In this document: piece by piece, positions 6,301 to 60,845 of the stretch
Layout: every line of letters starts with the position of its first letter
Position numbering within the stretch: position 1 is the stretch's first letter
Source: Ramazzottius varieornatus
Taxonomy: Eukaryota; Animalia; Tardigrada
DNA: 64,000 nucleotides
Reading direction: 5' to 3'
Assembly: GCA_001949185.1 (NCBI GenBank)
Contig: BDGG01000014.1
Coordinates: forward strand, 527,378 to 591,377
Notes under the pieces: generated by a model
The model's database searches: none
What the model was told of the DNA's origin: nothing
What the model saw: the letters and a program-made list of their open reading frames with translations, nothing else
Position numbers and translations under genes: made by a program

Positions 6301-8041
6301 GATACGCGAGCTGATTTACGCACCATGCAGTTTTCCGCACTTTTCGATTACTCCTCGTATTTTCCTGACCTGTGGTCGAAACTTGCTTTTAACATTAGGT
6401 TCGTGTTCCTCGAAGTCTGTTTCATATGCGTAAAAGTCCCGTTTGGATTTACCCTCAGGGTCCTGAAACTTCGAAGCCTTCTCTCCAGCAGTATAGTCAG
6501 ACACTGTTTGGCCCGCATTCGCATATGGACATACGCATGTTTTACGCAAACCTTATGCAGCTGAGAGATGGTATCCGACATAATATATTTTGTCCTGGGA
6601 ATATGTGGCAAGGTACTCTGGAGAGCCCATATGGAAATATTTTGTAAAACTTTTCTACTGAAGATCATTTTTATCGTTTCGCGATTTCCGAATATATACA
6701 GCTAGTTACGATGCGATTTATGCGAAAACGATACGACTTCTGTTGCAATTGTATCGTGACCGGGATTATGTCGTGATGGGATTGTATCGTGATCTATCCT
6801 GGCCGTTTAGACTTTTAGAAAACCTGTCACGTGACGAGTTACCAGTAGCCATAAATGACCCATATTTTCTTGTCCAGACTGCAGACGCATCCCGGTTGAT
6901 TGGCTGAAAAGGCGACTGGTCTCTCACCTGACCTGAAATATTCAAGTGTTGTCCACACAATGGCTCTTAAAAATTTGAAAATGGGACTGGGGGATCTCGT
7001 GATATGATGGAACGAACGAAAGACCCATAAGGAAAACTCCTTCACGTTTACGGATCGGTTCTCCAGTTCGTTCAATGATATAATTATTACCTCCGTGTAA
7101 TTTATGTAATTAGATTCGACGATCGAATAGATACCTATGACGTCTACAAAGTAGAAACAATCGGTAAGTCCTCATTTCATACTTCCTTATTCGTTTGATT
7201 GATCGGGTTTTCTCGGGGTTGTTATAGTCGGGATGTCGGCAAATGACTCCATGATCGTTTTCCCTGGTGGCGCATACATTCGGCCAATACCAAGGGAAAG
7301 ATGCGCCACCTGCGGTAGCGATCATGTTCCGCTCTTTCGCGGCGTCCTGATTCTGCTTTCCATTTTCAATTTTCTTGTAGGCGATGCATACATGATGGTC
7401 TCAGGACTGCCTCGCAGAAACGGTTTAAGACACGCAGGTAAATATCCTGAAATTTACTATCAGGTCTTCTGATATGACTTAAAAAATAGTACTGTAGTGC
7501 TACCAAATTATCGCGCACTGAACCACGTGATGAGTCATCGCTGTCCGGTGTGATCAGATGATGACCTACGACACTGACTGTACCTTATAACGAGCTTGTT
7601 TAGTGCGCCACCGAGCATGATGGAGGCATGGCCGTCACAGTCTACATCGAAAAGAACGTAACCGTAACCCAACACATCAAGCCAAGATATGATCGTTATT
7701 GACACGGTACCAGCTATCGTGTTCAGGAAAATCGTCATATCAGCTTCCCGCCATCTCGATCGGTGCCGGTAATAGTACCGTGCTAAAATGTCGTCACTGA
7801 CGGCCATCCATTCGTTACAGTTCTGGTACGACGGATCTGTTACAATGCGCTGCGTTACAGTTAGGCGAGGGTAATGCTTTTTGATATCCTTCAAGGCAGT
7901 CTCGTAGGGCGGTGCAACGAAGAACAAGCTTCCCATTTCTGCCGCGTAGTACAAAGCCAGGGTGATGATCTCCACCTGCAGTACGCCCTGTTCAACTACG
8001 GAGACATTCCTGGAAAGGTGTGGTTGGCCGGATGGGGTCAT
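3352..8041 (-). CDS. Natriuretic peptide receptor-like (ANF_receptor ectodomain) single-pass receptor with short cytoplasmic tail; multi-exon, 5' end uncertain
   Basis: Exons join in frame: RYYNWNTVSIVVD, LRRLNRASR, LAARKLNMTEGQH, WQYGDELDE|EAEKAYRSVLII, WPGPWPPPNRPRCGYDG, TM segment ELAAIVAAYVIVVGVAF, tail ...WWNVSLRHF...AAAID* (TAG 3352-3354); long intron 5188-7583. Confidence 0.75.
7237..7341. repeat. Intronic hairpin element, family A (1 unit)
   Basis: cggcaaa...gatcgttttccctggtggcgcatac-attcggccaataccaagggaaag-atgcgccacctg...cgatcatg, inside intron 5188-7583. Confidence 0.75.
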
Positions 8042-9820
8042 TTGAAGTGTAGCAGTATTGCGATTGCCGACAAACCTAAATCAAACGGGCAACTGAATCC
8101 CCGAACTTCAGCTCGATCAAAGAGACGATTTACTAAAATGCCTCCTGGACCAGAACCATAAGCGCAATATCCAATCTGGGTTGCAGTTCCTTCGAGGAAA
8201 AGTATTTGCGCTGTACTGCATGGCGGTAGTTGGGACGTTGACAATAGAGAAAAACTGACACGCAGACGGAAGTGCGACCGCGGCAATAATATTTCATCTC
8301 CGTAATCGAAGTTTTTAAAAAGTTGTTGGAGTAGTTCTCAGAGGCCGTGTATGACAGGTATTCGAGCTTCAGCTCTTCTTCTACAGGGTGAGTACGCCAA
8401 CTTGCTACCACCTCTTAACAATTATAGCGCTCTTGGCTGAGTGTTTTCGTCCTCCTAACTATTTTTCCTTACTTTAGCATCCCTTTTGCTACCTTTTAAA
8501 AATAACATAGCCTGGAAGAATGTCTACAGGAAGCCCAGATTTGACCCGGGATCAGAGAAGGTGCAACCGCGGAACTGCTCCGGCCGGAACTTTCGCTGTT
8601 TCTTCCTCGGGGAGAAAATCTTTCTTCATTCAGTTGCAATCTTGACTGAAAACTGCTGATTGCAAACCGTTTAGTGGTAGTGCAGCAACCGATAAGAACA
8701 TCGTGATTCATTTTACCACTTGCTGATTCACTAATACAGCCACTTTCGCGAAATCGTGCAAAAATAAAGGATGATCGCCTATAAACAAGATTTGTCGAAG
8801 TGTTCTGAAGCGTTTTCCGGAAAATGACAACATGAAAGCGTAGCCAAATTCATGAGCTATCTGAACCACAAACGTCTTGAGAAAAACTGCGTGAAATCAG
8901 AGTGCCCACTTTTCAGGAAAAACAAGGTCCGCCTGAATCAACAACGTTTTCAAATTTTGAGGGAACTTCGAGAAATTTTCTTCAGTTTCCTGGAACGATC
9001 TTGCAATGTGGACAGTGATCCAAAATTATCCCAGGGACTCAGCTAGACAAAAAGCGGTTGTAAGTACAAACTCTTGGTTCAGAACACACCTTGCAATTTC
9101 TTCCACGAGGAGGGGTTTCTTGGCAAAATCGTCAAATTCAACGATATTAATTCATTTCCAAGTTAGTTTCATCTTCTTGCGATTTATTCCAATTTTCAAT
9201 GAGCACCTAGGTAGTTGTACCCAGGCTGAAATCAAATTGCGGATGGTATCCCAAAAGAGAAGTTCCGGAGAACCTATCTCTTTCGTGGCGAGAAGTCTCC
9301 CTCACCGGAAATCATGCCAATCAGCTTTCTCAACCCTGGTCTCAATGCATGCAAGTGAACTATGTCTCTTTGAGAAGACCTTGAAAAGTTGTACGAAATC
9401 TGTGAACGACCGAAAAGAGAGCCAGCACTTCGAATTTCTTCTGCGCTGAAGTTCCAGGTGGTAGCAAGTTGGCGCACTCACCCTGTACAAGGCAAAGTGC
9501 TACAAGTCACGAGCGAAAAGAAACATTAGCTTTGATCCTTAGTAGTGCGGGACAAAAGTGGGACGGTAGCAATATAGTTGGTATTGCAAGGGTTCGCAAC
9601 AAGGTTCGTGCAAGGTTCGTGCGTGTTGAATTCCTGGAGCTGCTGAAACTCTACATCGCGTTAGCGATGATGTCTGCTTTGCTCAATCGAGCCTCATATG
9701 TTATCATAATATACGGTGTGGTTTAGCCAACAGCCGCAAATTCTCCGGTGACATGCCCACCACGGGTCCTCAACCATCATATAGTCAGCGCGATTGTCAA
9801 AGTCGAAAGGCACACCTATA

Positions 9821-11347: not shown

Positions 11348-11599
11348 ATTCAATTCAGTTGGGTGTGTTTTCGATGACTACGAGTACTCAACGGAATCGA
11401 TGTTTTTCGGTTCCTCTGAATGGAGAATTTTGTCTCCTACAAGTCCCAACAAGAGTGAAGTGAAACTAAGGCAAAAGAGGTGAGAAGGAATCTGTCGAAG
11501 AATGAGTCTCGGCAATGTTAAAAAGCTTGTGAAATGAAAAACTGTAAGGCCAGCAGAGGCGCCTGCGTCGTCGACGGCCGGAAAGACGTTATACGTCAT

Positions 11600-15050: not shown

Positions 15051-17539
15051 ATGTTTGGTGACAGCCGGATTCGTTGGATTGTACTTGTGGCCTTGTACCG
15101 GTTAGGCCCTTGTCGTGGGTACTCGCCAAAGTTGACTTGGAAATACCCCGAAAGTTGGTACTGTCTTCGATTAAAGAATTCCAAGTCCGGCCAAGCGCCT
15201 ACTTAAGACATGTGCTTTTCCGCTTTTAGGAAACCTCACTGACTCCTGCGATAAAGTGATCGACGTCGACTGTGTAAATAAAGTCCCGACAAGTGACTCT
15301 TGGGATGGGCAATATAATCCCGCCATGGAAAGTCTGGTCTTTTATTCTTATCCGGCGCAAGGCTGCAAAGTGGAATTTCGAGTTATTTGTTCCAACACTT
15401 CCGTCGTAGCCGGACTGGCTTTTTATATCAACGTTAGGTGGCTATCCAACTTGGCAGCTGCGTCTGACCCTGCCAAATGATTAACGTCCTTCATTGATTA
15501 GGCTTGCGAGGTTACAGGGTCAAGATGTTCTGCACCTGTACCAACATAGTATTTCCAGTGGAATGTTTGACCGCGTACAAACGTACACCAAGGACAGCGA
15601 ATGTCGGCAGGCACCGACTTCCTGCGGCCACTTTATGGGTAGGTTCAGCCGGGGTACGGCTGGACATCCATCACCCGGCAGGTACTACATCGAGTTCGAG
15701 AGCAAAAATTCCAACGCTTCGACCATTGTCAATGACGACGCATCGCCAGTCTGGATAGACGTCACCATGGTCAAGCAGCTGGCAAGTAAGTTTAGCTCGG
15801 CCCCATTCGTCGATTGATCACATATTTCAATAACATTGATTTCAGGTAGCGTAGCTACAGCTGACGATGAGCCAGTGGAAGGGTCATTTCACTGTCCCGC
15901 CCTTCAAGGCTACGTTCACGCCAACGCGCTGTGTGAAGCGGGGGATCGAGTCAACTGTCCGTCCAGCTATGCCAACTCCACATCCCTTTTTAATCTCAAC
16001 AAACCTACGGCAACGCTGCAGTTGTACGATTGGCCCTTGTACCAGGAAGTGTGTTGGCACGATGGACGACCGATATTTACGACGTTGGCACCGGCACCGA
16101 CCGCACTGGCACCGTTGGTAAATGAGGATTCTTACTTCAGTTACCACACAGGTAACTGTGTGCGCCACTCCATCAGCTATAGTATGCCCGATAACTGACG
16201 TCGAGTGTGATGCAGAGTCTGCTTTCAGACTTTCTGGATCAGTATTGCCAAAAGACATTGTTCCTACCTTGTGAACGAAACTCTCCTCGTCGAGCTGGAA
16301 CACTGCGCTTTCTGTATAACAAGCTACCCTGGCACAGCGCGACCAATCGAAGAAGCTGTACGATCAAGATTGAGGTCGACCAGAAGTCAAAAGACTGCGA
16401 TACCGGAAATCACTACGGGCTGTACTTCCATTTCAAGTGAGCTCCAAGGCCTCGTTCTATTAATTCTGCAGTCTAGCGTTTCCAATGAACAGATTTTAAA
16501 ACTAGGAATATCCATTTGGCCAATGATTCCTTGAATGGGGGTGACGCTCTTTACATCGAGAAGTACGACCCAAAGTCTAGTAATTCGCTTGCGACGGAGC
16601 ATTTTTCCATTGACCGACCAACACCTTGTCACATCGGGCCACCTTTCACCTCCTGTGGTCAAGTGGTGACTTATGAGTACCGGACAGATCCTTACATCAA
16701 ACTTGTCTATACAGTGGGTATGGAAAAGACGGAAGACGGCCCGAGGGAAGGCGACCGGCTTCTCATCGACTACGTTGTTCTAACCAGTAAGCCCTACACT
16801 TACCTTATATTTGAGGCGACTTCCGGCTTTTTTCAAGCAGAATTCTGATGCGCCAGTTGGGAAAGCAGACATACTGGGCAGGATCGCAGTTCCAACTGGC
16901 GCACACTTTCAGCCAGTGAAGCGAAGGATGTGCGCCACTCGAAATGACGATCGTTGCCAGTTTCTTTACCGGTCTTTTAAACAGCGCTGCCGTTCCTCTA
17001 TGATTCTGCGATCTGTCTTTATTAGAGCACGGTGATTCGGCCGGGAAAGAGAGCGAATGCGCTGCCCTGGGTGGCTTCATGCCCAGCCACTTTATGTGTG
17101 AAATCCGCGACCGCATCAACTGCCCAGCCTCCTTCAACGGTTCGCAAACGTCACCGGTGGAAAAAGCCGATCAAGGCTACGCTTGGTCCAAGTTCGATGA
17201 CGTCTGTCCTCAGTACGGTATAACCAAGGCCCCAACAACACTTACGGCAGCGACCACTACCACAACGGACGAGCCTGTAACGGATGAATTGGTGAAAATA
17301 AAAAGGAGGGAACCCATGGTGGTGTTCTCTGTCAAGAACAACGGAACGGAGATAATGGTTACCGGTAGGTATGCACATCCTCCCTGATACTTGTTTGTTA
17401 CTTCTTGGGTTGAACGTCTTTCCGTCTTCTAGACCAGAATTTCAAGCACATGATCATCGGTATGGGCGTTTGTGGAGGGATTGCCCTGGTGGCGGTCATT
17501 GGCTTTGTCATTTGGATGCTGAAAAGAGCCAGGTTCTGA
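15051..17539 (+). CDS. Type-I membrane protein with two CUB-like + Cys-rich (LDLa-like) modules; multi-exon
   Basis: N-terminal hydrophobic leader; duplicated motif CPALQGYVHANALCEAGDRVNCPSSY / CAALGGFMPSHFMCEIRDRINCPASF; Thr-rich stalk; TM IIGMGVCGGIALVAVIGFVIWML then KRARF* (TGA 17537-17539). Confidence 0.7.
16810..16972. repeat. Intronic hairpin array, family A (2 units, first degenerate)
   Basis: caactggcgcacac-tttcagccagtgaagcgaagg-atgtgcgccactcg within intron 16787-17025. Confidence 0.75.
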
Positions 17540-18068
17540 AATCTGTCATTTGTCTGCTCTTAATATTCGGAGCCACGAAGGTCCTACGGTTTTATCTTTT
17601 ACATTTTACGATCGATTGTTGTTTGATAAAGTTCACGCTGGTAGGGTGTAGAGGTGCAGTATATTTCATCGAGAGCCCCGACAGAACAGGCTTCACCGAG
17701 CTGTCCAATCTCATGTACTGTATATAGATGGTTGGCTAACACTTTTTTTTCGCTTCAACATCAAGCAGAATTGATCCATTGGATTTACACACACTTAGCT
17801 GGGTATCATTCATTTCCCAAGCGGCGCACGTTTTCATTGTTATTGGCTGACCATGTCTAATTTTGTCCAATTTTTATGCCAGGTCTATGAATTTTACTAT
17901 GCACGCAGTATCAATGATTCGGAACTTCCAAAAGTCTCAGAAAATACTCAATAAAAAAATCAAACAACAAGAAGCGACGCCTTACACGAGGCGAAACGAA
18001 CCATCGTTCGGGGACCCAGCATTGCTTTTGACTGCGCCAGCTCTAAGCGTGACCACGGTGGAAAAAGC

Positions 18069-20105
18069 TTATAGTGGACGCAGAAGAGTTTGCTGCTGCT
18101 GCTTCTTGCCTGGAATGGGTTCTGCTGTTTGAGTGTCGTCCGTTTTGCGTTTGCGGGACTTGTTTTTGCCCTTGCTTGTCTTGGATTTGACGTCGGGTGT
18201 GTGAATTTTCTGTTTCTTTTCCCATGCTTCAAACTCTTCACCTTCCGAAGACAAAATCTTCTTTTTCAAACCAAAAGGCTTTCTGTATAAAACACAAATT
18301 GCTTCATAGTACTAAATTAACTCCCCTGAAAATGTTCGATGATTTGCGTATCTTGTGTGCACGTAGAAACAGAGTAAACTTCCACTCACCCGTAAATACT
18401 GTAAAAGTGCTTGATACATTCTTCCGCTTCGATCTTGTCTTCCCATGAGCTATCTTCGAGTATCCAACCTAAATAATACCACAGAAATGGGCTCAGCATA
18501 CATCCGATATGTTTCAATGAATTCGACGATGAAATATCGGCAAACGAAATGAGCATCGATCGCTATCTCAAGTGACGCAGTATTGCATTGTAACTGGCCG
18601 AAAGTGTGCATCACTTGAAAGAACGATCTTGTCGAGTTTAACTGGTTTTTTTGCCTAAGTGGCGTACATTTTCGGGATTATCGACTGCGAGAATGCGCCA
18701 CTTAGGAGAAGTGTTCTTGTCGAGCTTGTTTGCCATCCCAAGTGACGCACGTCGTCAGTCGTGTTGGCAGGAAGCATGCGCCACTTGGAAGACGATCCGG
18801 TTGAATGCATCTGCCCACGTCCTCAATGTTATTACCTTCCCATTTGATGAGGTACCACATCTTGCCTTGGCTCCACTGGACGCCCAAGATGCGTTCTACT
18901 TCATACAGGTCCTTGCCTGTTTCTGCGTCTCTTCCCGTTGAGCCGGGGTTCTTGACTGGTCGGACGGTGCTGACGGAAATGTTGGTCAGCTGTTTGGCGT
19001 TCTTGGTCTTGTCGGCCCATTCTCTGGTGTCCTCGCACTGGATCAACTGGTCATTGATAAGCCTCTGTCTGCTGTCCAGTTCAGCGTGAAGTTCTTTCCG
19101 CACTTCTATCTCGTCCTGACGGTTCCTGCAGAGACAAAGACGACATGAATTAGAGGCTACTTGATGACTCCATTTACCTTAGGTAATACGTACCATACAT
19201 CACTCATCCGAAGCGAACGTCCTGCTTGCTGCAGTCGATCCGCGTATTGCTGACGAAGCTCCTCCGAAACTTGACACTGCTTTCGCAATTCTGGACCACT
19301 TCGAATGGACGCAAGCTGACAGAGAAACCACAGTTCGCCCTGAAACAAAAACAGAGACAACAAATGTAATTTGGTATGTTGCATAACGAACCAACACGGG
19401 AATCATGACGTTATCCACGCCAGGTCGATCCAGTATTCAGAAGGTTGGAACGAGAGACTCGACAAGATCATCTCTTGCAAGTAGCGCACGCTTGTAGCCA
19501 GTAACAGGGTAAGCGTGCGCCACTTGGGAAAAACGATCAAATTGGACAAGTCTGCCATTCCAATTGGCGCACGCTTTCAGCCAGCATCAGTGAGCAGGTG
19601 CGCCACCTGGGGAAGACACCACACCGTGCTTGTTTGCCCACCTTCCAGTTATTGTTCTTCACTTTCTTACTTTGTGTCTTTGATGGCTCAAAATAGCTTT
19701 GACAGGCTTCGAAGGTCGGACACGCCATCCCTCGGCATCTGTTGACGGTGCTTTGCAACGACAGGAAGGAGCAGTACATCGAATATCATCCTAGAAGAGA
19801 CAACAGAAGAAGACACTAGTCTCATTTTGGGCAGTGGTCAAGAACAGCTGTTCCTTCCACAGCGCAGCTATGTTTAGCCATGTTGATGCTGTACGGTACC
19901 GACTTACCGTCCTGATCATGCCCAGGCATTCTTCGAAATCCACATCGTGATGGAACTTTTCCACTTCGGGATGACGGTCCAAGTAAGTTACTCGTCGATC
20001 CTCCGTGCGCCGTGCAGCGATTCTTCCAAGGAGATGCAGACGCTCATGAAGCTTCGATCCTTCCTGTGGCAACCCTCCGTCATCCAGATTTTCCTTCAGC
20101 TCCAT
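18069..20105 (-). CDS. Chromodomain-containing protein (exons 20105-19908, 19790-19671, 19339-19194, 19125-18836, 18468-18390, ~18283-18069; upstream exon possible)
   Basis: Spliced product reads DLYEVERILGVQWSQGKMWYLIKWEG|WILEDSSWEDKIEAEECIKHFY, a canonical chromo fold pattern; second degenerate chromo-like PVKAILSHQRHK|GELWFLCQL; basic C-terminal tail. Confidence 0.75.
18538..18815. repeat. Intronic hairpin array, family A (3 units)
   Basis: caagtgacgca..gtgcatcacttg; taagtggcgtac..atgcgccactta; caagtgacgcac..atgcgccacttg in intron 18469-18835. Confidence 0.85.
19447..19639. repeat. Intronic hairpin array, family A (2 units)
   Basis: caagtagcgcacg..cgtgcgccacttg; caattggcgcacg..gtgcgccacctg; ends ttgtttgcc; intron 19340-19670. 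Confidence 0.85.
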
Positions 20106-24850: not shown

Positions 24851-26062
24851 TAAGTTGTGTGACTTAAAGTCTTAAACCATACCGTGTCATATTATATTAA
24901 TACATAGGGGGTTCAATAAGCTTTAACGATCAATAAGCTTTAACATTCACCAGAAATTTTGTGGTCCTTCGATCTCTGCGATTTTTTGAATAAGGTGATA
25001 GCAACTTTTGGGCAATACTGCAAAATTTGAGCCTAGGTTGGGAAGTCATTCGTTGAGAAAGGTATGTAAGGTATCAATAGGGATGTTTTTTGAGTGCTCC
25101 ACGTTCTTTAAGAAATTATATTGTTTCTTCCCCGTTGTATGTTCGAGTTTGACTCCAGCACTAGATAAAAGAGGCATGTCTAGTGCCAAGTTTGAGCAGA
25201 AGGAAGTCAGGCCGCAGCGCTGTAAAGACTCGAGAAAAAATTTCTAATTCCTCCAAAGCAAAAGTGCGCAAGTGAAACGTGGTTAATCCATCTGGTGCGC
25301 TACCTGATCACCAGCCGGAATTTGCAAAATTTTCTGTTTCCTCCTCCTTGTTTCCACTCCTGATGAAATTCAGCTTTTGCTCTTTATTCCCTTCACGCTC
25401 TAGTTGCTTTTTATCGAAGCGCTGCTATCCTTAATCTTCGAGAAACTGCATTTCCATTATCGGCGCGGACAACGCAGGAACAGCATCACGAAATGCGCGA
25501 GTTTACGAAAAAAATCGAAAAACAGTTTTTGGCATTCTTTTTTCAAAAAATTATTCCTGGTTCTGTGCGAGTACCAGGTAGCTCATCTTTTGAGGATAGT
25601 GGCTAGAAGTGATTGGCTATCTATTAAACGCGTGTTCTGGAAAATAACACTTCCAGGTGGCCTATGCCTTAAAACTTATTGAACCCCCTATGTAGCATGT
25701 CATGTGCGTCTGCTGCGATAATTGATTTTCGCTGCGCGACTTCGTCTTCTATAAGTTCGATTCTTCGACCTACAGTACCTTTATCAAATTTGCTCCTTTC
25801 TCTTACCGCGTATCTCGCCGGTGACATCATGCACAGTACATGTCTTACATCAGTCGAAAAAGCTGATCTTGAAACGGTCAAAGGAAACTACGGTTAAAGG
25901 CCGTGTACATGCCAAGTATATCCAAGAAAGATGTGCACAAAGCTGCAAACTTTGTTGCACCAGAAGTTAAGCGTACAAAAATATCCGTACATTCTGATAA
26001 CCAGTAATTCCATGTATTATTCAAGCCCAGTCGACATACTAGAAAAGGAGAAGTCGATTCCA

Positions 26063-29000
26063 TTACGCGAAATACATTCCCTTAACGTTTTCATGAACCT
26101 TAATGCGCCGGTTCAAAGCTTGCACGTCCAACGCCGGACCAGAAGACCCTGACGTCACAGTAGCCCTGTAAGGAACGCAAACAGCATAACGTGGTCATCC
26201 ACCGACTGGAGAAATTAGATGGCAGTTGGCCAACAAACTGGACAAGATCGTTTTCCGAACAGGCGCATGCTCCCAAACAACAACACCGCAAATGTGCGCC
26301 ACTTGGAAACTCAACAAGATCGTTCTCAAGAGTGGCGCACGTCTACTAACAATGGAGACGTGCGCCACGTAGGAAACGATCTTGATGAATTTTCTCAAGT
26401 GGCGCCCGCTGTCGATCAGAAACAGTGCGACCGTCTGCCACTTGGGAAAGCAGGCTATTGTCGAGTTTGTTCGCCGATCTCCCGTTTTTTTGAAAATATT
26501 AATTTCCTCTTTCCGAATTCTTCATGGTGAAAAGCGACGTTCCTGATGAAGCAACGGAACTTACGTGTCATTGCCAAAGGGTTCCTCCAAGTGAGCCCGA
26601 GCGCGGAAGGCTACGTGATGGGCGTAGTAGACGGGAGCCGGAATGGAGACGCTTCGGTTGCAGCGAGCGTAGACGTAGGTCAGGTAGTACGAGAAGAGCT
26701 GAATCTCATCCGCCGTATACTTGCTGTCGTCGTACAGGACGTTGTAGTGAGCCGGACGGGAAGTACCCTGTTTGAAAAAAAGCCGTGTTTCTTACCATAA
26801 AACCATTGCGGATCATTTTCAGGTAAAAAGTACTTACTTGGATTCCGAAATGGCTGCAGGTGAACCAGTCAAATTCCAGGTAGTGACAGATGGCCGTATC
26901 GGTTGTGGTCCCTGCAACGAGTGTCGAGGTATCAAGCGAGATCATCTTATACTGACCGGAGAGTTCGACCAAATGTTTCAGAAGGATGGTCGTACCGGGA
27001 GGAACGTTGCCAGCTTTGCCGACGGCATCTGTGCGGGGATTCGCTGCAAACAGGCGAGTGTTGTGTCGCTTTCCCACTACAATGTACCTGAAAAAAGAAA
27101 GTTTAATTGTTTAGATAAAGTACGACACATCCTCCATGAACAATCATCATCAAACGGAGCTTCTGAAACGTACTCAAAAAGTTACTGCAAGTGGCGCACA
27201 TTACCGGCCAATAAAAATGTGAACGTGCGCCACCTGAGAAAATAACCTCGATAAGATCGTTTTCTCCAAGTGGCGCGGGCTTTAATCCATGAACAATATA
27301 ACGTGCACCACTCAGGAAAACACTCACACTCGACGATATCGTTCTGCCAAGTGGCGCACGCTCACGGCCAAAAACACTGGAAGTACGCGCCACTTAAGAA
27401 AGTAAACTTGTCTCGTTTGTTTGCCGAGCTCACAACCGCAAACTGCTTCTCTAAAATTTTGGGACTTACGTGATAGGAGGCTTGTAAGAGCCATCAGGAA
27501 CCAGCTCCATGCAGGCTTTCTGGATGGCGCTCAGTTCTTCCACCATGACCTGCAGACAAAATTTCGTATCGAACATTACCTGACAATAAAACCGTACGTG
27601 AATACTCGTATTCATCAAGAGAAAACTGGACTAGGTGGGACTTACGTGGAAGTACTGGCCTTCAGAGACGCCATCGCGGTAGAAGATGATGCGCTGTGGT
27701 TCTCGGTTGCCACAAAGATTCTTGAACTCGATCAAGAGATCGCGGATCATGTCCTTCAGCGTGTCCATAATTTCCTGGCGCGCTCCCTGAGCCCGCACGC
27801 GCGCTACGTACTTGGTGAAAGACTTGTTGTAGGAAGCCACCACTGCCGCTACCGACGGCTTGGCCTTCTCACCTGCAAACAGACCACAGTACTTTTTTCC
27901 GCCAGATAATATTCAAAACCAAAGCTCGGAAAATAAAATAATGCGGCCACGTGGGATATTACCTGGAGAAGGATGCGTAACATCGGCTCCGAAAATAATA
28001 GTGGGCTAAAAAACGAGCGCAATATCAGTAACACGCTGAAGTTAGGACTGATGCAGTGATGCTGCCATTTTTCTACAGTAATGTCTATTAAGGCCGTGCC
28101 CGACATGTACCAGTCAAGGCCGTGCTCAGCACGAACTCGACCGGGGGTTTCGTAGAAAAAAGGCAGAATGTGAACAATGGCCGAAGTAACTTCTTTCAAA
28201 TTTTCGTGTGAAAAATGTACTTCGAAAGAGGTGGAAATATGTACCTTGTCGACGAATCGCTTCAAGATGGCGTTGTTGGGACTGATTTCCTTGACTTCGG
28301 TGTTGATACCGCCCAGCTTGGCGTTGATCTTGAGCATGACGTTGCTGACGTACTGATTCATGATGCGCTTGTTCCAATGGTCCTCAATCTTTTGGCCCAG
28401 GACGACCTGTGTGACGATACCCACCTCCACATCACCGGCCTTCTTTATATCGGCATACTGCGGACCACGACGGGGAATGGCCACCATGATCAGCTGCAGA
28501 TCTTTGTTCTTCGCTCGCTCTTGCTGAAACATCTTGATGAAATCCGGGTTGTTGGAAGCACGCGGAGCCATGCTGGGCTTGGAGATGTCCATCCCACGTT
28601 GCCTGAAAGCACCAAAGAATGAAACCCAAACCCAAACACCAAAATCTACTGACAGTTTTTGACAGCACGGCAAACAAATCCGACAAGATAATTTCCCCAT
28701 GCGACGCACGTCCTCTATGTTATTGGCTGAAAGCGTGCGTCGCTTGCGAAAAATGAATTTGATTTGTGTTCTCAAGTGGCGCACTATTACCGTGTCACTG
28801 CCCGGAAGTGTGCGCAACTGTCAAGTTTGTTTGCCAAGATCACGAAAAGGCGAAGTTATTGACAATGTCACCAGTGTAAATTCTAACCTGCCGACGCCGA
28901 TGAATTCGCTGAGGAAGACATCCAACGGTTCGTCGTCGTTCAGCATAGCTGGATCGCACAGGTTGACAAAGACCCAGTGTTTTAGAAGCTTCGGATCCTT

Positions 29001-31449
29001 GAAGGGAACATTGCGCGCTTCCCATGTTCCGTCCATCCTTTTCACCGACAGCTACCACCAAAGCAAAATTGAACTGAATCATTCAAAATACGGACAATCG
29101 AAAAGCGCTACCTTAAAAACACTTACATCTCCCTTGGGTCCTCCAGCTGACATGGTCGGTGCTGGCAGGATGCGACCATCGAAAGCCACCATCTCAGAAG
29201 CCACTTTGATACCAAAAGCATCCAGAAAAACGTTCTTATCGTAGTTGACCCTGGAAGAATCCTTGCGCAGCTTGTTGATGCGAACCTCCCTGTCAGGAGC
29301 TGCAAACAAAATCCACCGTTAAAAAAATTGAAACCTCGGCAAGTAAACTCATCAAGATCGTTTTCCCAAGTGGCGCACGTCACGTGTTAGGACTAGTGGC
29401 TGGTAACGTGCGCCATTCGAGAAAGCGTACAAGTCGTTTTCTCAAGTGGCGCAGGTAACCAGTATCGTTGGCTTATAGCGCGCGCCGCTTAACAAAGAAA
29501 TCTCGCACGTGTCGTTTACCAATCTCTCACTCTTATTATTCCATCTACGATAAGTCGCAGTTTGTTTGATTATTTTCTGTCCATCGAAAAACGAAGCAAT
29601 GTACCGGGTTGAGCGCATTTCCTGACCATGATGGCAGTCTGGTCTTCATTCAACTTCCGGGGAACTTTCTGGCTCATCAGCTCGCAAACTTCCATCGGCA
29701 TCATAGTCTTGCCGCTGCCAATCTACCAAGAAACAAAACGTTATGAAGACGTCGAAATAATCTGCAAAACCAGTGTGTGGCGAGCGTACTTGGAGAAGTG
29801 GTAAGTTGGGGTACTTGAGCACAATCTTGTATTCGTTCTTGAAGTAGTCCGCCACCGTCACCATCTTGCCCTTGTTTTCGAACTTGTGACTAGCAGCTGT
29901 CGCGTTAGCCACGCCAGTTACACGTTGTCGACGAACACCCGTAGGACCATGCCGCATCTCCACCTTCAACGTTCTCATTTCGCTGTCGAAAGACTTGCGT
30001 TGGAAGTCGTTCAGCTGGGTTGGGGCGGGACGGTAAGGCGGTGGCTGCTCTCCCGGTCGCGCAAAAGGAAGCTTGCCACCGATGAATTCCCTCAGGAACT
30101 CCACCACGTTCATCTTCTTGTAGAAAGCTGTATTGGCCACGTCCAGGTTCAGTGTAATTCCCCATTGGCACGGTCGGGCACTCTGGAATGAACAGAAGAA
30201 CGTTGAAGACGCACCCAAATCACTTTCCGTGAATAATGACCGGGTTCCACTACAGTAGGATCTAAAATAGACAAACAGGGCGTACTAATTTACGGTTCGC
30301 TTTGAAAGTGCACCACTACGCAAATTTCAACCGCTGTTCGTCCACCTGCATACACGAATAACCTTTACGGAGTTCTATACCAGGGTATGCAGGTACGTAC
30401 AGTAGGGGTTCAGCCTTCCACCTGCATACACATTAAACCGTATTAAGCGTGACATTGAAGTATGCAGGTTTATGAAATACAAGTCTTCTATTGTTGAACT
30501 TTCATTTGCTTCTACAGTTTTCCCTACGTCAACTTTACTCAACAATTGTCAAGAACTTACGGAATAAATTCCCGGCCAAGTTTCACGGCCCCATCCCAGC
30601 CCGAAGGTATAGTTTGGATCGCGAAAGTAGATCGACCGTCCAGCAGCAATGTTCGTTTCCGTCGCCATTGCAGCCTCTCTGAACACCGTGTTGATGCATC
30701 CAAACACCTCGATGGGGAACTTCTTGCTGTGATCCTTCATGCTTTCGCCCAAGACAGCCCAGGAAACAGCTGACGGGTTGCAAGGCTTCACCGTGACCGT
30801 TGCCACAACCTCCGATCCATCGGGATCTTTTGGGACAGTCACTGTGGCTGTGTGGCCATCCTTGGATGCCATCTTGGCCTCCTTGGCTGTATAAAGGATC
30901 TTCTCGCCGTCAAAAACGGGCATGGAATCCCCAAAGACAGGCTTGAGGGTCGCTGCCACGTAGGCTTTCCAAATCTTTCGCTTGACAGGCTTGGAGATTC
31001 GTGGCGCATCTCCTTCCCCACCTCTGGGTGCCCTGTTGGGCTTGCCATCGCCTTTGCCGCCTTCCCTGGCTTTCTTCTCCACAGTGATGTCCACATCGTA
31101 ACGGAAGAAGAAGCCCTTTGTGGGACAGGCCACCTTGAAGCGATTTGAGCGAAGCCTGAAAAAACGCACATAATCACAACGCACCAATAATACAATCATG
31201 GTGCATGACGACACCGTAAACAACAGCCGTAAACAACAGCTGTATATCCTAGAGTAAACGGAGCTGGAAATTATGATGTAATGAGCGAATTGAAAACAAT
31301 GAGGAAATGACGAACAGACGGTTTCCACACAAAAAGCTAACGGTTGATTACTTGATACGATCGCCTAGCCCCCCAAAATCTGGTCGGAGGATTGGCTGCG
31401 TTGGATTGCTCGGCTGAGCTCCAACGATGGTCGCCACTGGACCAGACAT
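26063..31449 (-). CDS. AGO: Argonaute (AGO clade), 14 exons, ~906 aa
   Basis: Exons 31449-31352, 31155-30561, 30182-29790, 29722-29605, 29299-29127, 29051-28888, 28602-28245, 28005-27963, 27872-27646, 27549-27470, 27087-26996, 26911-26838, 26767-26565, 26165-26063 sum to 2721 nt with consistent phases. Motifs [85 protein letters not shown]-terminal MYFA*. Confidence 0.95.
26228..26476. repeat. Intronic hairpin array, family A (3 units), AGO intron 13
   Basis: Starts ggccaacaaactggacaagatcg, ends ttgtcgagtttgttcgccg; three ggcgc..gcgccac-type hairpins. Confidence 0.85.
27165..27426. repeat. Intronic hairpin array, family A (3 units), AGO intron 10
   Basis: caagtggcgc at 27188, 27267, 27348 (periods 79 and 81), each closed by a gtgcgccacttg-like arm; ends gtttgtttgccg. 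Confidence 0.9.
28668..28835. repeat. Intronic hairpin array, family A (2 units), AGO intron 6
   Basis: Bounded by cggcaaacaaat / agtttgtttgcc; gcgacgcacg..cgtgcgtcgc and caagtggcgcac..gtgcgcaactg. Confidence 0.85.
29337..29500. repeat. Intronic hairpin array, family A (2 units), AGO intron 4
   Basis: cggcaagtaaactcatcaagatcgttttcccaagtggcgcacgt..acgtgcgccattcg; ctcaagtggcgcag..gcgcgccgctt. Confidence 0.85.
30344..30469. repeat. Intronic hairpin array, family B (2 units), AGO intron 2
   Basis: acctgcatac(30344)-31 nt-gtatgcaggt(30385); acctgcatac(30420)-30 nt-gtatgcaggt(30460); period 76. Confidence 0.85.
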
Positions 31450-50792: not shown

Positions 50793-52498
50793 CGAGGGAC
50801 CATTCAGACCATGTTAGTCGCCGATCAAAATATCAATGCTTTCACAAGATAGCTGAGACCCTTGGCTCTCTACAAAGTATGGGGAAGAATGGCAGATGAC
50901 CACTTCCGGGTCTCCCAGAAAATTGAGGAGGAGTACCGTTTATTAATCGGAAATACAAGGAAATACAATGAACTGCTTCCAAAAAACTGAATTTCCGACT
51001 TTTAAATATTCGAACCGAAAACGAATCAATACAAGACGAAAAGACAAACTCTCACAAACCGGATCTACGGTACAAATTGAATTCGGGAGCTCGGCAAACA
51101 AACTCTACATGATCGTTTGTCTCAAGTGGCGCACGCTTCTAGCCAATAACACAGAAAAGCTTACCTCTGTATTGCAAAGTACGTCCACCGTGCATATCGT
51201 AGTTGCAACCGCTTTGGTCCATGTTGGATACGTATGACGGGTCAGCTGCGAGGGTTATCAGCTTCACTCCGGCTACGAATTCGGCTACTGTCTGGCTGAT
51301 GTCGTCCAGCTCTTTAGCGTAGTTTCGAGAAACGAATTTCGTTACTTGCGAAAAACAATCTTGAAAAGCTTCTTCCACTTGTAAACGCAATTATGCGACG
51401 AACCCTTCCAGCCTAACTACTGCGTTTATTCGGATCGCCATCCGACGAATATCTCGATCGCGTACAATCATTCTCCGTTCTTTCATATCATCAAACTCTC
51501 GCTTTACACGCATTCAGATCTGAAGCAGCTTTTCGTTACGACTTCCACACTGTTCCATCTGTTTTCTCCACCGATAAAGGGTCATGAGATCAGGAACACG
51601 TTTGAACTGGGTCTGAACGGACGATAGCTTACGATTCTTCCCTTTCCCTAACGTCCAGAACTGAACAGCTCCTTGTCTTTACGAGAACTCAACATTCTCT
51701 CTCCGAGTTTTCTTTGGGGAATTATCGGGATCATAGGTCGATCCACTTGAAGGCAGCTGACTCGATGCCTCCTCCTCGCGTTGCTCCAGTTCATCCTCTG
51801 CCATCTCGTGTATCTGGTCTACGGTAATTTCCATCGTCTCGTCTTCATCTTCGTATTCCAAAGTGATCTCCTCCGTACTCACATCTTCAGGCGACAAAGC
51901 AGCGCTCCTGAGTAGATCTAAAACGAGAAAGTGGCCGTTAAACCACATTTTGAGAATCCACTCGTACGATAGAGTTCCGAAAGCTCCACTCACCTTCGTT
52001 AAGATCTACCAGCTTGACTTCTGCTTGCGTCGCACCAGATATCGTCGTAAAGTCTTGGAGCCTATCTTGCAACAAATTCAGGATGCTCCGTGGATTTACA
52101 GGCATTGCTGTGGTGTACGGAATATTACAGAGAATGCGTCTATCAGACCGGAAGTCCGGAAACGGAAAATTAATCTGACCGTTGGCTCACAAATTTCATT
52201 CAAATTTCTTGTGATGACATGTTATGCATGACCTGACATCACATGACAGGTATGTGACGTCAACAAGCATTGTGACTTGATTGAGAAATAACTTGATTGA
52301 TTGGATCTTACTCTACGCAAATCTCTCTCAAATCGAGCTCGCCTATTCAGTCTGCCTCGTATTCCAGAATTTCTGCAGAGCCCGGAAGTGGTCATCTGCC
52401 ATTCCTCCCCATGCTTCGTAGAAAGCCAAGGGTCTCAGCTATCTTGTAAAAGCATTGATATTGTGATCAGCGACTAACGTGGTCTGAATAGTCCCTCG
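50793..52498 (-). mobile_element. Tc4/Tc5-like (pogo-related) DNA transposon, defective
   Basis: ~130-bp TIRs starting CGAGGG (50793-~50924, ~52368-52498), 3-bp TSD TTA on both sides. Interrupted transposase reads AVQFW..G...LSSVQTQFKRV..LYRW, IVRDRDIRRMA, VYKWKKLFKIV.RKVTKFVSR (CENP-B-type HTH), NMDQSG..DMHGGRTL (first catalytic D), with stops and frameshifts. Confidence 0.85.
51092..51160. repeat. Half unit of hairpin family A inside the transposon
   Basis: cggcaaacaaactctacatgatcgtttgtctcaagtggcgcacgcttctagccaataacacag, abutting a minus-strand GTAAGC donor at 51164. Confidence 0.8.
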
Positions 52499-52736
52499 TT
52501 AGTTCTTGTTCTCTTGCACCGGTAACATTGCTCCGTCAATTACATCAACAGGCCAGCAAACTAGCCAGGATACGAACGTGTACAGATCAAAATACCTACG
52601 TACGGCTGCCAGCATGCGTATAAATTGGGAATTGCGAAGGATTAAACGGAGCAAAAACTCGCAAAAAATCTCGGGTGATTGTACAAAGCATCCCTCTGGA
52701 TAGAAATATTCTACGTTCTTCTTGGATGTGTGTGCT

Positions 52737-55829: not shown

Positions 55830-58800
55830 TCAAAGCAACGAATCATGGTTGACTCTGGAATAAACGTGGCCGGAGCCAGGATGGTTCATTCGGTTCTTCA
55901 AAAACGGGCAAAGTCTCTGCACATTCTCGTCAAAACGCTGTTTCGGTCGTCTGAAAAACAAGAAAATATAATTGTTATGAGAACATCGATTCACAGAAAA
56001 ATAGAACAATTTTTACATCGTTCGCAAGTCGTAAGAAAGTTTCTCCAGACTCTTCCCCGTCGTTTCCGGTACCACGAGGAAGATGTAGAGTGCGCTGAAG
56101 ACGTTCACGGCGCTGTAGAGAAGAAAGGTGCCACCCGGAGTCAGGACGGTCATGACGTTGAGGAACGTCAGGGAAACGAGAAGGCTGGATGACCAGTTGA
56201 GAATGTTGGCGAACGACATGGCTCGGCCTTTGATGCCGGATGGATACAGTTCCGTCAGCACCAACCATGTCACTAAAAAACAAAACATGAAATTCACAAG
56301 AATAATTATCGGGGGAGAATATTATTAAGACTTAGAGAACAATGTCGAATCTGTCGTTTAAGAAGGTCTGAGACGTAGGCAAATGATTTCCAGATCGTCT
56401 ATGCGAATGGCGCACGCCCTCAGTAACAACACTGGTAACATACGCCACTTGGGCTAACAATCTTGTTGAGTTTTCCTACTGGCACATGCTTCTAGTCAGT
56501 CGCAATGAAAACGTGCGCTACTTGAGAGAACGATTCGGGTGAAACCATTTACCGACGTCCCATTTTCTTTTCCAGAAAACAAGCGCAAATTGAAATGAAT
56601 TACTTGGTCCAAAGCCGATGGAATATCCAACCACATAGCACAAAAGCGCCAGGAAGCAAACGACAGCTTGGGCTATCCTCGCGGAAGAATGGCTTGAATT
56701 TGTGACGTCACTGGAAATGTTTGATATGTTTTGATCACTATCTGCTTGAAAGACCATAGTCTGTGTGGATGTGTTGGGTGTAAAAGGTGAAGGAAATGTA
56801 AGTTGAGCGTGGGAAGGCAGGAGGGAATGGGGTCGAAGTGAAGTCTCGTTGGTCCGGGAACTCAAGGCCGATGAGGACGGGGAGCAGGGTCGCGGGACGG
56901 AGGGTGGGTGGAACACCGTGGCCAACCCTACTATGGCGATGCTGACGGCCATCACAAGGCAGCCTGTTATGAGGAAAAACCTCCGGCCTTTCTTATCGGT
57001 GATGGAAAGCGCCACGGCGGTCGCCGAAACCTGTGAGAGAAAACATTCATGGCACTCGTGGTTCCCGAAACATTAAGCAACGAAAATGGAACAAAAAAGG
57101 AAAATAAAACAAATATGAGAAAATGACAATTCTGGAACTATCCCACAATACAAGCGCGCGTAAGCCACTTTCCTTGTGGACCCGCGGTGCATGAGATTCT
57201 CTGGTACAGAGGGTAAAAACAGGTCTCGGTCCACATTTCAAGGATATTATTAGGTGGCCTATGCTGGTCCATGAGCTTTTTGTAGCTTCGCTTGCCATAG
57301 TCTGGTCCGTCAGATTTTCGATCCCTGACGCGCGTTTGCCACAACAGTCCGAAAATCGAAGAACAAAAGTTACAACCAAATATTTTGAACCTTGACAACG
57401 CCCAGGCCGAGGGAGGCCAAAGCGGCCCACTTTGAAGCGAAGCCCAACTGTTCGAAGACGACCGACGCGTAAAACAGCATGTTGGGTTGTCCAGAAAACT
57501 GAAAGGAGATTCATGAGTACCGAACATATACAGCAGACCTTCGAGTACAAGACTACAGAAGTATGAGAAGGGATCAAGGGGTCGAAGACGTTTCCCTACC
57601 TGCTGAAGAGCGACGAGGCTGAATCCGATGAGTAAGCGGTACAGCATGTTGTCTTGCGACTTGAACAAAGCCACCGTCCTATACGTCTGAAAGGAATAAA
57701 GGCCATATTCTACATGAATAGAACAGGGAGCCTGGTTTGGAAATACAGTAGAACAGATAGGGACTAACTTACCCCATCCGCCACCAGAGTGTGCCGGATA
57801 GAGACGAACTCGTTCATCGCCTCATTGCGACTTCCTCGGAGGTTCTCCAGAATTAGTATCGCCTCCTTGTCGTACTTCTGCAACATCTTTTCTCGAGGAC
57901 TACATTCAATTACCATAGTCAGATTCTGTACTTGTATCAGAATAGAAGTCAACCGAGTCAGAGAAATTTTCGCTCACCTAGGCGGAAGAAACAAATACGT
58001 CCCGACAATCTGAATGCTGACTGGTATAGCACCAATTGCCATCATTATTCTCCTGCCGCAAAAAAGGAAACAATACAGCCATAGAGGAAAACGCACATAG
58101 TATGTACCGGGAAACTAACCCACCATGAGTGCTTGACTCCCTGAAGGAAAAAGCCACAAACGTAAGCTAAGAGGAACCCAATGGTGATCCCCAGTTCGTT
58201 CAGCCCGACCATAAATCCTCGCTTCTCCTGGAAGAAACAATGCATTTTTGTTTTTCATAAATGTCTTGCACCTCTTGAGAAGGGTTAGAGTGACTTGAGA
58301 AATACTTTAGGAGCAACTTCTGAGACATATATACATTCGGCAACAGCAGCCATCGACATGCCGAACCCTTGAAGGAACCTTGCGGCGGAAAGTGTGTCGA
58401 GGGAGTCCGCGATGCTACCCACGCCTGTTCCGATCAGGAACATGCAACAGGCGATGATGATGGATCGTCTCCGACCACATTTGTCAATCCAAGGGCCTAA
58501 AGCAAAAATCCCAGCATCAGCTTCAATTTTACTTCTGGTCTCGATATTTTCATAGTACTATACCTCCAAAAAACGAGACGACGATCGCTCCACCGATAAG
58601 GCATCCTACCAGAACTTCTTCTTGTTGACAACTGAGCATCCAGTGTTCTCGAAGAGCGTGAAGGATCGCGGAGATGATTCCGATGTCGTACCCGAATGAC
58701 ATTCCTCCGATCAGCGACAACGCGCCGGCAGTCGGAACGATCGGGTACTGGCACCATCTCTTCAGGGTGGACACCGGCTGACTTCCGGTATCAGACGTCG

Positions 58801-59605: not shown

Positions 59606-60119
59606 GATTTCTGCCACGGCTACCCGAGCGCTAATAATCCTGTAAACGATCCATCATCCCCCAATACCCGCTTTTCCACGTCCCGTACGACGTAGCAACT
59701 TTCTGGCTCCAAGAGAAAAATATCCGACCACGAACTGGGCATCAGCTGGGAAGACGGTTGTGGGAGAAGAAAGACAGTTAACGTTGGTAGTAGGAAATCA
59801 ACCTGTTGACTGAAATTAAGAATACGCCGCTTTGCCGCACCGTAATCAGAGATGCCGCGTCGCAAAATCAGCTGGACTGTCGTCATTCACTTGAAGATTA
59901 TTGTCTTAACCACGCCTTCGCCGACTGAAAGGAAGTCGCGATGACGTCAAACAGAAGATTTGTGTTGATTGTTGATTGATTCACAACAGGCAGAAAGAAC
60001 TGCTCCAGTTCAGTCCAGATTCGAACTTGTCTGCGTAACCAGCGTATGGTGTATCTTCGATCAGATCTTCCAGGCGCCTTGCTTACTCTAACGGAAGGAT
60101 CCGGCAGCTCGACTGATAG

Positions 60120-60845
60120 ATGGCTTCCAAGAAGTTCGGCCAAATAGCCAAGATGTTCGAGAAATATGTCAAGCACGTCAAAGGGATCGAGGGTCTTCTG
60201 AGTACCGTAAGCATCTCTTTCCTCGGATAATTTACTGTTGAATTTCTTCGATGTTGCAAGCTTACCTTCCATTTCGATTAGATTAGGGTAAGCTAGTTTC
60301 ACTGGAGGAAGGAAAGGTCGTGTACGAAATGGAGGTAATGCCTGAGCAGTGCAATGCTGGAAAGACGATGCACGGTGCCTTTGCAGCGTTGCTGGTGGAC
60401 AACCTGACGGGAGCCGCTATATGCACCAAATTAACGACTAACGAGGAGCTACCCATGTTCTCCGGAGTTAGCGTAGCTATGAATCTAAAGTAAGTCGAAA
60501 TACTGACAGCGAGTGGGTATATCACCGTCGAAATATTTGGGAGCTTGGCACGTAAGATTGTCTGTCCAAGTAGCGCACGTTTTCAGTGTTACTGGCTGGT
60601 GGCATGCGCCACGTGGAGGAAACGGTCCAGACGAGTTTTCTTGTAGAGGTTCCGTCTTTTGTTCTTATTTTTCTCGTAGATATCTACGTGCTTCGAAATT
60701 GGGAGAGACAGTCACGGTGACGGCGGAAGTGCTGAAAATTGGAAGAAACCTCGCTGTCGCCCAATGTGACATCGTTGGTAAGGATGACGGCAAGTTACGC
60801 GTAACGGGACAGCATACAAAATTCGTCGGGCAGAATAACTCTTGA
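60120..60845 (+). CDS. ACOT13: Acyl-CoA thioesterase 13 (hotdog fold), 3 exons
   Basis: GKVVYEMEV..EQCNAGKTMHGAFAALLVD, GVSVAMNLK|YL, AEVLKIGRNLA..DI..KDDGKL..TGQHTKFV. Confidence 0.88.
60547..60643. repeat. Intronic hairpin element, family A (1 unit)
   Basis: caagtagcgcacg-ttttcagtgttactggctggtgg-catgcgccacgtg in intron 60490-60679. Confidence 0.8.

Follow-up and report, generated by a model that had tools for sequence, protein, structure and literature searches.

MITEs such as Stowaway and Tourist in plants and the palindromic intron repeats of Caenorhabditis accumulate in or near genes, and DNA transposons commonly carry binding motifs in internal or subterminal positions, with free spacers. 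Introners and MITE-derived introns occur in Micromonas, dinoflagellates and Oikopleura, and in mammals the SINE B2 has spread CTCF sites. For the tardigrade Ramazzottius varieornatus, a curated repeat library has been published (Peona et al. 2024, Mob DNA 15:10, PMC11071193), and the entries examined here include ramVar1-7, listed as DNA/Sola with a length of 123 bp, a 4-bp TSD and a 56-bp TIR, and ramVar1-23, listed as DNA with a length of 125 bp, an unclear TSD and a TIR described as "whole". Here, we follow up a prediction made from the sequence of a 64-kb stretch of this genome (hereafter the window), which described arrays of hairpin repeats with conserved arms, termed family A. We find that these repeats correspond to elements already in the library, and that they combine a strong concentration in short introns with a slower decay of one internal pair of motifs than of the remaining sequence.

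Family A units in the window

The repeat arm CAAGTGGCGCAC, allowing at most one mismatch, matches the window 20 times against a chance expectation of 0.37, and 17 full hairpins are found with up to three mismatches per arm. A profile scan with nhmmer recovers 22 family A units in 12 arrays, in good agreement with the roughly 21 units at 11 loci originally predicted, the additional array being the partial unit at 17810-17854. The 49-bp unit (12 + 25 + 12) is flanked by the arm extensions AAGATCGTTTT / AAAACGATCTT, and units follow one another in 1-3 copies at a period of 75-87 bp within arrays capped by GGCAAACAAAC / GTTTGTTTGCC, so that the inverted arms, 25-nt spacer, approximately 80-bp period and capped ends described earlier were all recovered. 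The arrays and the one host gene identified by its domains are as follows.

7250..7326, plus strand: single unit (nhmmer E 2e-13); intron-like, with minus-strand coding-like flanks at 6845-7165 and 7574-8008
16878..16952, plus strand: single unit with a degenerate half unit ahead of it; intron-like position, with plus-strand coding-like flanks at 16492-16845 and 17010-17366
17810..17854, minus strand: partial unit (loop and right arm); convergent coding-like flanks, ambiguous context
18558..18801, minus strand: 3-unit array in an intron-like gap of a minus-strand gene
19460..19615, plus strand: 2-unit array; intron-like gap, the host gene (minus strand) being shared with 18558..18801
25900..31351, minus strand: Argonaute gene (Pfam ArgoN, L1, PAZ and Piwi) with 13 GT..AG introns, their joints present in RNA contigs
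26241..26452, no strand assigned: 3-unit array of mixed loop orientation, caps extending to about 26228-26475; in Argonaute intron 26165-26563 (399 nt)
27181..27410, plus strand: 3-unit array in Argonaute intron 27085-27466 (382 nt)
28684..28819, minus strand: 2-unit array, caps at 28661-28843; in Argonaute intron 28602-28886 (285 nt)
29352..29504, no strand assigned: 2-unit array with opposite loop orientations; in Argonaute intron 29300-29604 (305 nt)
51107..51158, plus strand: half unit that retains the left outer arm, the left arm and the loop but has lost its right arm; ambiguous context
56390..56535, plus strand: 2-unit array, a minus-strand coding-like segment lying 75 nt to its left; context to the right ambiguous
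60554..60628, minus strand: single unit in an intron-like gap with plus-strand coding-like flanks at 60287-60490 and 60705-60839

Units had been said to share one orientation within each array, which is true of most arrays; judged by their loops, 26241-26452 and 29352-29504 are mixed. The proposal that one host of these arrays is itself a transposon found no backing, as the ORFs tested between 52.7 and 61.8 kb contain no Pfam domain, transposase domains included.

Identity and structure of the element

A consensus built from 62 single units, taken from the window and from elsewhere in the genome, coincides with the published ramVar1-23 sequence in its termini, outer arms and arm motifs, and with ramVar1-7 in its loop. 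Judged by this consensus, family A is ramVar1-7 / ramVar1-23, an ordinary element already present in the published library (PMC11071193), of which the original prediction took no account. The Sola label is the assignment of the library's curators, and among the library entries examined there is no autonomous Sola element (PMC11071193).

The full unit of 123-125 bp consists of a left arm of about 50 bp, a 25-nt centre and a right arm that is the reverse complement of the left; the 49-bp "hairpin" first described is only its innermost part. Arrays are made up of two or three such inner parts, with shortened outer arms, between a single pair of true termini. These termini read GGGAG / CTCCC, with terminal bases GGGAGCTCGGC, and the element has the features of a MITE: terminal inverted repeats, small size, no ORF and high copy number. 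Beside GGGAG / CTCCC, both flanks of 36 copies give an A-W-W-T logo, the one visible sign of a target-site duplication; exact 4-nt duplicates occur in only 1 of 11 copies with good termini, the copies being old.

Abundance and age

Genome-wide, at least 8,677 core pairs are found with up to two mismatches in 18 nt, against one in a reversed control, and 452 units have perfect 12 + 12 arms; we put the total size of the family at roughly 9,000-12,000 units. The consensus loop has no exact copy anywhere in the genome and only 29 copies with three or fewer mismatches, and for three copies or arrays that were tested, the closest paralogues share 78-89% identity. No young or active copies were found in either the paralogue or the genome-wide loop searches, in keeping with the earlier description of an old MITE or minisatellite-like family.

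Concentration in introns

RNA contigs of four studies show the removal of four introns of the Argonaute gene, each of which contains one array. The introns of this gene that lack arrays measure 67-96 nt, with three longer exceptions of 196, 239 and 378 nt; the first two contain neither family A nor a second repeat family, B, and the 378-nt intron carries family B. Most long introns of genes like this one owe their length to family A. Five further arrays in the window have same-strand coding-like segments within 350 nt on both sides, and the context of those at 17810, 51107 (the half unit) and 56390 is ambiguous. The claim that every copy is intronic is mostly upheld, with four transcript-verified and five intron-like arrays, and is uncertain for these three; the companion claim is borne out, the long non-coding stretches of the window being free of arrays. 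Outside the Argonaute gene, our intron calls rest on a codon-usage proxy; a predictor combining splice sites with ORFs skipped short exons when compared with the verified Argonaute introns and served as a rough guide only.

The same pattern extends beyond the window. In total, 354 kb of genomic DNA was examined in detail, of which 93 kb was centred on copies; 30 loci of 3 kb each were included. Introns make up 34% of the non-exonic DNA of this genome. In a regular sample of 200 kb, array density is about 2.3 per kb in short gaps bounded by coding-like sequence on the same strand and about 0.07 per kb in non-coding gaps longer than 1 kb: the short gaps hold 24 of the 32 arrays in 22% of gap bases, and the long ones 2 of the 32 in 36%. 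The intron enrichment that the original prediction had singled out for checking is thus supported in this sample, and the bias is real. Target-site availability was considered and rejected as its source, the density of AWWT being 26.5 per kb for short gaps and 23.3 per kb for long ones. The bias may stem from a preference in insertion or from better survival of copies within introns. Orientation relative to the host gene is balanced (40:39).

An association this strong, together with the short residual intron sequence around many copies, would fit an introner-like element, whose insertion creates its host intron by carrying or generating the splice sites. In the four verified introns, however, 40-88 nt or more separate the 5' splice site from the element and 37-95 nt separate its other end from the 3' splice site, both values varying, and similarity between copies ends at the GGGAG / CTCCC termini. 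The residual introns, at 116-150 nt, resemble the ordinary introns of this genome (mean 158 nt), and some copies lie outside intron-like gaps. Because the ends of the element fall at variable distances from the splice sites, we reject the introner model and give it almost no credence.

Slow decay of an inner motif pair

Across the 62 single units, the arm core is 0.925 identical and free of indels, the loop is 0.726 identical with seven indel events, and the outer 25 nt are 0.72-0.78 identical with 30 indel events on each side. The contrast between arms and loops reported earlier (about 0.92 versus 0.73 here) is thus confirmed, and it extends to the remainder of the element: outer-arm identity ranges overall from 0.66 to 0.78, and the true termini, at 0.66, have decayed like the loops. 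Best kept are two motifs of 9-11 bp, inverted relative to each other, (A)AGTGGCGCA(C), and held 25 nt apart; the remainder of the element decays 3-4 times faster. The degree of conservation is graded along the motif, and the sequence of each arm is preserved independently of the other. A second family of repeats, B, displays the same pattern.

Two technical sources of such a pattern were considered and rejected. Detection bias was set aside on finding the arm 0.88 identical in copies located through the outer 37 nt alone and 0.875 identical in those located through the other arm. Base composition, CpG content and GC-biased conversion were likewise discarded, G/C and A/T sites being protected alike within the arm (0.923 and 0.930) and neither class being protected outside the arms (0.712 and 0.754, respectively).

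The palindromic arms could in principle, as the original prediction had suggested, be kept as an RNA stem; within the pre-mRNA, it might be a substrate for Dicer, Drosha or ADAR or might modulate splicing by looping out the insertion. All verified copies are indeed transcribed within introns, units from other loci are also present in RNA contigs, and the array-bearing Argonaute intron 27085-27466 folds in silico at -128 kcal/mol, compared with -102 +/- 4.9 for shuffles (z = -5.3); moreover, the palindromic nature of the arms means that either orientation of insertion places identical arms in the RNA. However, compensatory changes, which had been named as a check, stand at the shuffled level: 69.5% of cells are paired versus 69.0 +/- 0.4% after shuffling partners among copies, and the covariation score of 0.169 versus 0.162 is reached by 52 of 500 shuffles. 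In a separate count, pairing within units was no better than pairing between halves of different units. Mismatches of the G:T and A:C types are equally frequent on the sense strand in the arms (40 versus 39) and number 84 versus 72 in the inner stem, against a tolerance of G:U on the transcribed strand. The balanced orientation relative to host genes also speaks against an RNA stem, as does the equal conservation of arms in intron-like and other copies (0.908 versus 0.892). Of the roughly 50 pairs of the stem, only 9-12 survive, its outer part having decayed; an Rfam scan of the whole window gave no match, and the RNA contigs have no listed differences from the genome sequence. We accordingly reject a structured RNA, whether pre-miRNA, mirtron or other stem, consider a maintained RNA stem very improbable, and think that the motif pair is not a base-paired stem of either RNA or DNA.

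Selection on the transposon or on the host

A more substantial alternative is that selection acted at the level of the transposon only: the arms would be transposase sites, the difference between arm and loop would predate insertion in many long-lived lineages, and nothing would be maintained in the host today. Internal motifs with a free spacer are, as noted at the outset, common among DNA transposons, and family B displays the pattern seen in family A. Other arrays of two or three units align across their spacers with the same period, which suggests that multi-unit forms may have been mobile, and recent tandem duplication in place found no support, as adjacent units of an array are no more alike than random pairs. 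There is also slight substructure among the loops (pairwise SD 0.126 versus 0.097 in column shuffles), making some divergence of lineages before insertion possible. Against this stand four observations. No near-identical copies exist anywhere, although continuing turnover among some 10,000 should leave many; arm identity across copies is nearly independent of non-arm identity (rho 0.14, p 0.15); the true termini, which transposase recognition would also need, are as decayed as the loops; and the phylogeny is close to star-like. We regard selection on the transposon alone as a serious but rather unlikely explanation.

The reading that we favor, and hold to be reasonably probable, is that family A is a dead, fully palindromic, non-autonomous MITE with a sequence-constrained paired motif, probably a protein-binding site. 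On this reading, the element spread long ago, inserting at A-W-W-T-like sites, and now lies overwhelmingly in short introns that existed beforehand and whose splicing it does not prevent; its insertion has lengthened them from about 70-150 nt to 200-400 nt. It has since died and decays as neutral DNA would, except for the inner motif pair and the 25-nt distance between its members. We infer that this pair is a sequence-specific protein site, used at first by the transposase of the element and perhaps bound even now by a host factor. The original prediction had offered a fixed-spacing site for a dimeric DNA-binding protein as its other possibility, and the independence of the arms, the graded motif and the kept spacer fit such a site better than they do an RNA stem. 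The data show the match to the library family, its copy number and age, the intron position and splicing, the slower decay and kept spacing of the core, and the lack of covariation; protein binding and the origin of the intron bias are inferred. As a counterpoint, purifying selection on about 20,000 short sites is a heavy demand in a parthenogenetic animal.

A bolder version, which we consider unlikely, is that the AAGTGGCGCA inverted pair at 25 nt is a candidate host-protein site, seeded by a MITE into thousands of gene bodies and still under purifying selection. Candidate binders would be a domesticated transposase and an architectural protein with multiple zinc fingers, like CTCF. If true, this would mean about 9,000 intragenic transposon-derived binding sites in a compact tardigrade genome and, with binding by a host protein, a large transposon-seeded site network in a non-model animal.

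Comparison with known systems

Being an ordinary and catalogued repeat family, family A ought not to be presented as a new regulatory code or a new class of RNA. For this family, Peona et al. 2024 provide a consensus and a classification only; their main text and the supplements considered here make no mention of intron bias, arrays of inner units or slow decay of an inner motif. Two of these features deserve the attention of specialists. The first is the density of family A, about 20 times as high in short introns as in long non-coding stretches, a concentration that bears on the evolution of intron length in a compacted genome. The second is that a paired 9-11-bp inner motif and its spacing have been kept across thousands of copies that are dead.

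Holohan et al. 2007 (PMC1904468) give AGGTGGCGC as the core of the fly CTCF site, and we took a match to either CCASYAGRKGGCRSY or this core as the criterion for a CTCF site. Of the 9 positions of the fly core, 8 are matched by the best-kept bases of the arm, AAGTGGCGC, and here too a motif has been spread genome-wide by a mobile element. In contrast to CTCF sites, however, the arm lacks the invariant G of the conserved AG as well as the upstream CC, and family A sites are inverted pairs 25 nt apart, so that the resemblance serves as a lead only.

Like the introners and MITE-derived introns of Micromonas, dinoflagellates and Oikopleura, family A is an intron-associated repeat family in a compact genome, but it does not supply splice sites and was inserted into introns that already existed. 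It comes closer to Stowaway, Tourist and the Caenorhabditis palindromic intron repeats, which are likewise small, non-coding, bounded by terminal inverted repeats and present in thousands of copies, and which are similarly tolerated in introns and lengthen them. Compared with these elements, family A is distinguished in being one whole palindrome, in having its inner parts arranged in tandem, and in keeping best a part that is internal rather than the termini.

Architecture, abundance and age of family A

The conserved-arm hairpin repeats of family A are readily recovered from the window: the arm CAAGTGGCGCAC has 20 matches with at most one mismatch (0.37 expected), a paired-arm search allowing 20-30 nt of spacer finds 17 hairpins, and a profile scan yields 22 units in 12 arrays. 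The sequences bear out the unit described in the original prediction, with 12-nt inverted arms about a 25-nt centre, extensions (AAGATCGTTTT / AAAACGATCTT), a period of roughly 80 bp (75-87 bp within arrays) and caps (GGCAAACAAAC / GTTTGTTTGCC) seen only at array ends; family-A units were likewise confirmed at its 11 loci, though it overlooked a partial unit at 17810-17854. The 49-bp hairpin is just the central part of a 123-125-bp palindrome, which runs from a left half (TGGGAGCTCGGCAAACAAACTCGACAAGATCGTTTTyCCAAGTGGCGCAC) through the 25-nt centre to the reverse complement of that half.

Across the assembly (55,842,812 bases, 200 contigs), 8,677 core pairs were counted (at most two mismatches in 18 nt, spacer 23-27) against one in the reversed control, with 452 perfect 12+12 arm pairs. 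A 200-kb sample drawn at 400-kb steps along contig 1 has 0.22 units per kb, which corresponds to about 12,000 units. Family A is old and inactive: the consensus loop with six arm bases per side occurs nowhere exactly, once with one mismatch and 29 times with up to three, the loop of the matching library entry ramVar1-23 has no genomic match within three mismatches, and, for one copy and two arrays of the window, the closest paralogues reach 78-89% identity.

Most arrays are short, with one (63), two (29) or three (5) units in the 97 arrays found in 354 kb of genome. Other genomic arrays align with those of the window across the spacers, at equal period and 70-78% identity, and adjacent units within arrays are no more similar than random unit pairs, which together imply that the arrays are as old as the family; perhaps they were mobile multi-unit forms. 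TTGGGA is common to the element terminus (TTGGGAGCTCGG) and the right-arm flank (CACTTGGGAAAA), and at least one internal junction (CACTTGGGATGGCAAACAAG; window 18716-18760 and others) reads like a right arm fused, at this motif, straight onto a left outer arm that is nearly complete. These junction sequences hint that recombination or slippage at TTGGGA microhomology may have built the arrays.

Arrays are concentrated in introns

Two features of this part of the window are:

25.9-31.35 kb, minus strand: Argonaute gene with ArgoN, L1, PAZ and Piwi domains
30337-30476, within the Argonaute intron 30183-30560 (378 nt): hairpin family B, two tandem copies

The Argonaute gene has 13 GT..AG introns, as mapped by RNA contigs of four studies. 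The four that host family-A arrays measure 399, 382, 285 and 305 nt, and array-free introns are mostly 67-96 nt. In these verified introns, the distance between element and splice site is 40-88 nt or more on the 5' side and 37-95 nt on the 3' side, so that family A was inserted into pre-existing introns, and an intron-creating element is rejected. RNA-seq contigs over 25900-31400 contain chimeric joints (for example, 26306 to 29353 and 29378 to 28719) and loose ends with family-A units of other loci, indicating that RNA pools contain the intronic units of many genes, which confuse transcript assembly.

The family-B unit consists of ACCTGCATAC, about 30 nt and then GTATGCAGGT. Genome-wide, it forms 234 perfect 10+10 pairs against none in the control, with spacers that look mutually unrelated, and the pattern of kept inverted motifs around a free spacer is thus not peculiar to family A. 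Within the published library file, the family-B motif occurs only in a few 'Unknown' entries (PMC11071193). A further Argonaute intron of 239 nt (28006-28244) carries neither a family-A nor a family-B unit. Inside it, ATGCTGCCATTTTTCTAC / GTAGAAAAAAGGCAGAAT form an inverted pair of 18 nt with arms 75 nt apart. The intron stays open when read in frame with the gene, and a short RNA contig of its own covers 28028-28218. Candidate readings are intron retention, an alternative exon or a further small palindromic insertion.

For loci without transcript data, we used a codon log-odds score trained on long ORFs, independent of gene annotation, which recovered all coding Argonaute exons on the correct strand. 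In the 200-kb regular sample, 24 of 32 arrays fell in gaps flanked by same-strand coding-like segments and with a residual length of at most 400 nt, which make up 22% of gap bases, and two fell in gaps longer than 1 kb, which make up 36%. Array density was 2.3 per kb in same-strand gaps of up to 150 nt residual length, 0.83 per kb at 151-400 nt and 0.07 per kb in the long gaps. Availability of the apparent target, AWWT, is ruled out as the source of this bias, its density being alike in short (26.5 per kb) and long (23.3 per kb) gaps. Besides the four Argonaute arrays, five window arrays are intron-like and three ambiguous. Taken together, these counts show a bias that is real and reaches past the window, though it is not absolute; the original statement that every copy is intronic mostly holds. 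A family-A-free stretch of the window holds a Kelch-repeat ORF of 423 aa and a zinc-type alcohol dehydrogenase with two exons (43869-45140 and 45651-47232); units were absent from genes with few or no introns there (43869-47232).

The arm core decays slowly, with no sign of an RNA stem

The earlier observation that arms are better conserved than loops holds among 62 single units aligned to the full-length profile.

Decay of family-A segments (segment; identity to consensus; indel events)
Arm core (9 nt, twice); 0.925; 0
25-nt centre; 0.726; 7
Adjacent 25 nt of outer arm, each side; 0.72-0.78; 30 each
Distal outer arm; 0.66; 57-64

Over all 136 units, Jukes-Cantor correction of core (0.90) and loop (0.70) identities gives a core evolving about 3.6 times more slowly. 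Spacer length between the arms is protected about four-fold. A detection artefact is ruled out, since copies found via one arm keep the other at 0.875 (own loops 0.67) and copies found via the outer 37 nt alone keep the adjacent arm at 0.88, regardless of outer-match strength. Base composition is likewise ruled out: G/C and A/T sites are protected alike inside arms (0.923 and 0.930), with 0.712 and 0.754 outside and 0.68 at CpG sites. Conservation is graded across the motif, peaking at TGGCGC(A) (0.87-0.97). Arm and non-arm identity are barely correlated across copies (rho 0.14), perfect-arm copies have loops as diverged as the remainder, and arms are equally kept in intron-like (0.908) and other copies (0.892).

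The proposal that the arms are maintained as an RNA stem fails. In 94 ungapped units, standard pairs fill 69.5% of cells versus 69.0 +/- 0.4% with 3' partners shuffled among copies, the covariation score (0.169 versus 0.162) is reached by 52 of 500 shuffles, and a separate count finds pairing within units equal to that between units at every position. One-sided changes in the stem well exceed two-sided ones, G:T against A:C mismatches on the host sense strand number 40:39 in arms, 84:72 in the inner stem and 144:112 in the outer stem, and loops lie in the same (40) or opposite (39) orientation to the host gene. An array-bearing intron does fold strongly in silico (-128 versus -102 kcal/mol for shuffles, z = -5.3), but the repeated palindromic arms account for this, and it is no sign of selection.

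Possible protein recognition of the core and comparison with known elements

As the arms are conserved independently as sequence, together with the distance between them, protein recognition would fit the constraint better than base pairing. Such constraint could still act in the host after insertion or have acted only while the element was mobile. Several points favour the former: none of the roughly 10,000 copies has a close relative, the loops are related in a nearly star-like way (nearest-neighbour identity 0.769 versus 0.741 in column shuffles), the true termini have decayed, and arm state is independent of overall decay. Reasons for caution are the small excess of variance seen among loops and the burden of selection on some 20,000 sites. 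Both the enrichment in introns and the slow decay of the paired core are genuine. Eight of 9 positions of the fly CTCF core, AGGTGGCGC (PMC1904468), are shared by the arm core, but other conserved CTCF positions are missing from it, making the likeness a lead only.

The element itself has a known counterpart. Our consensus agrees with two entries in supplementary file 3 of Peona et al. 2024 (PMC11071193), ramVar1-7#DNA/Sola (123 bp, 4-bp target-site duplication, 56-bp terminal inverted repeat) and ramVar1-23#DNA (125 bp, duplication unclear, inverted repeat 'whole'). The supplementary file contains 57 occurrences of the arm motif. Neither MITEs nor introns come up in the text of the paper, and the distribution and decay pattern are undescribed there. 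Family A is a real, abundant and already catalogued palindromic MITE.
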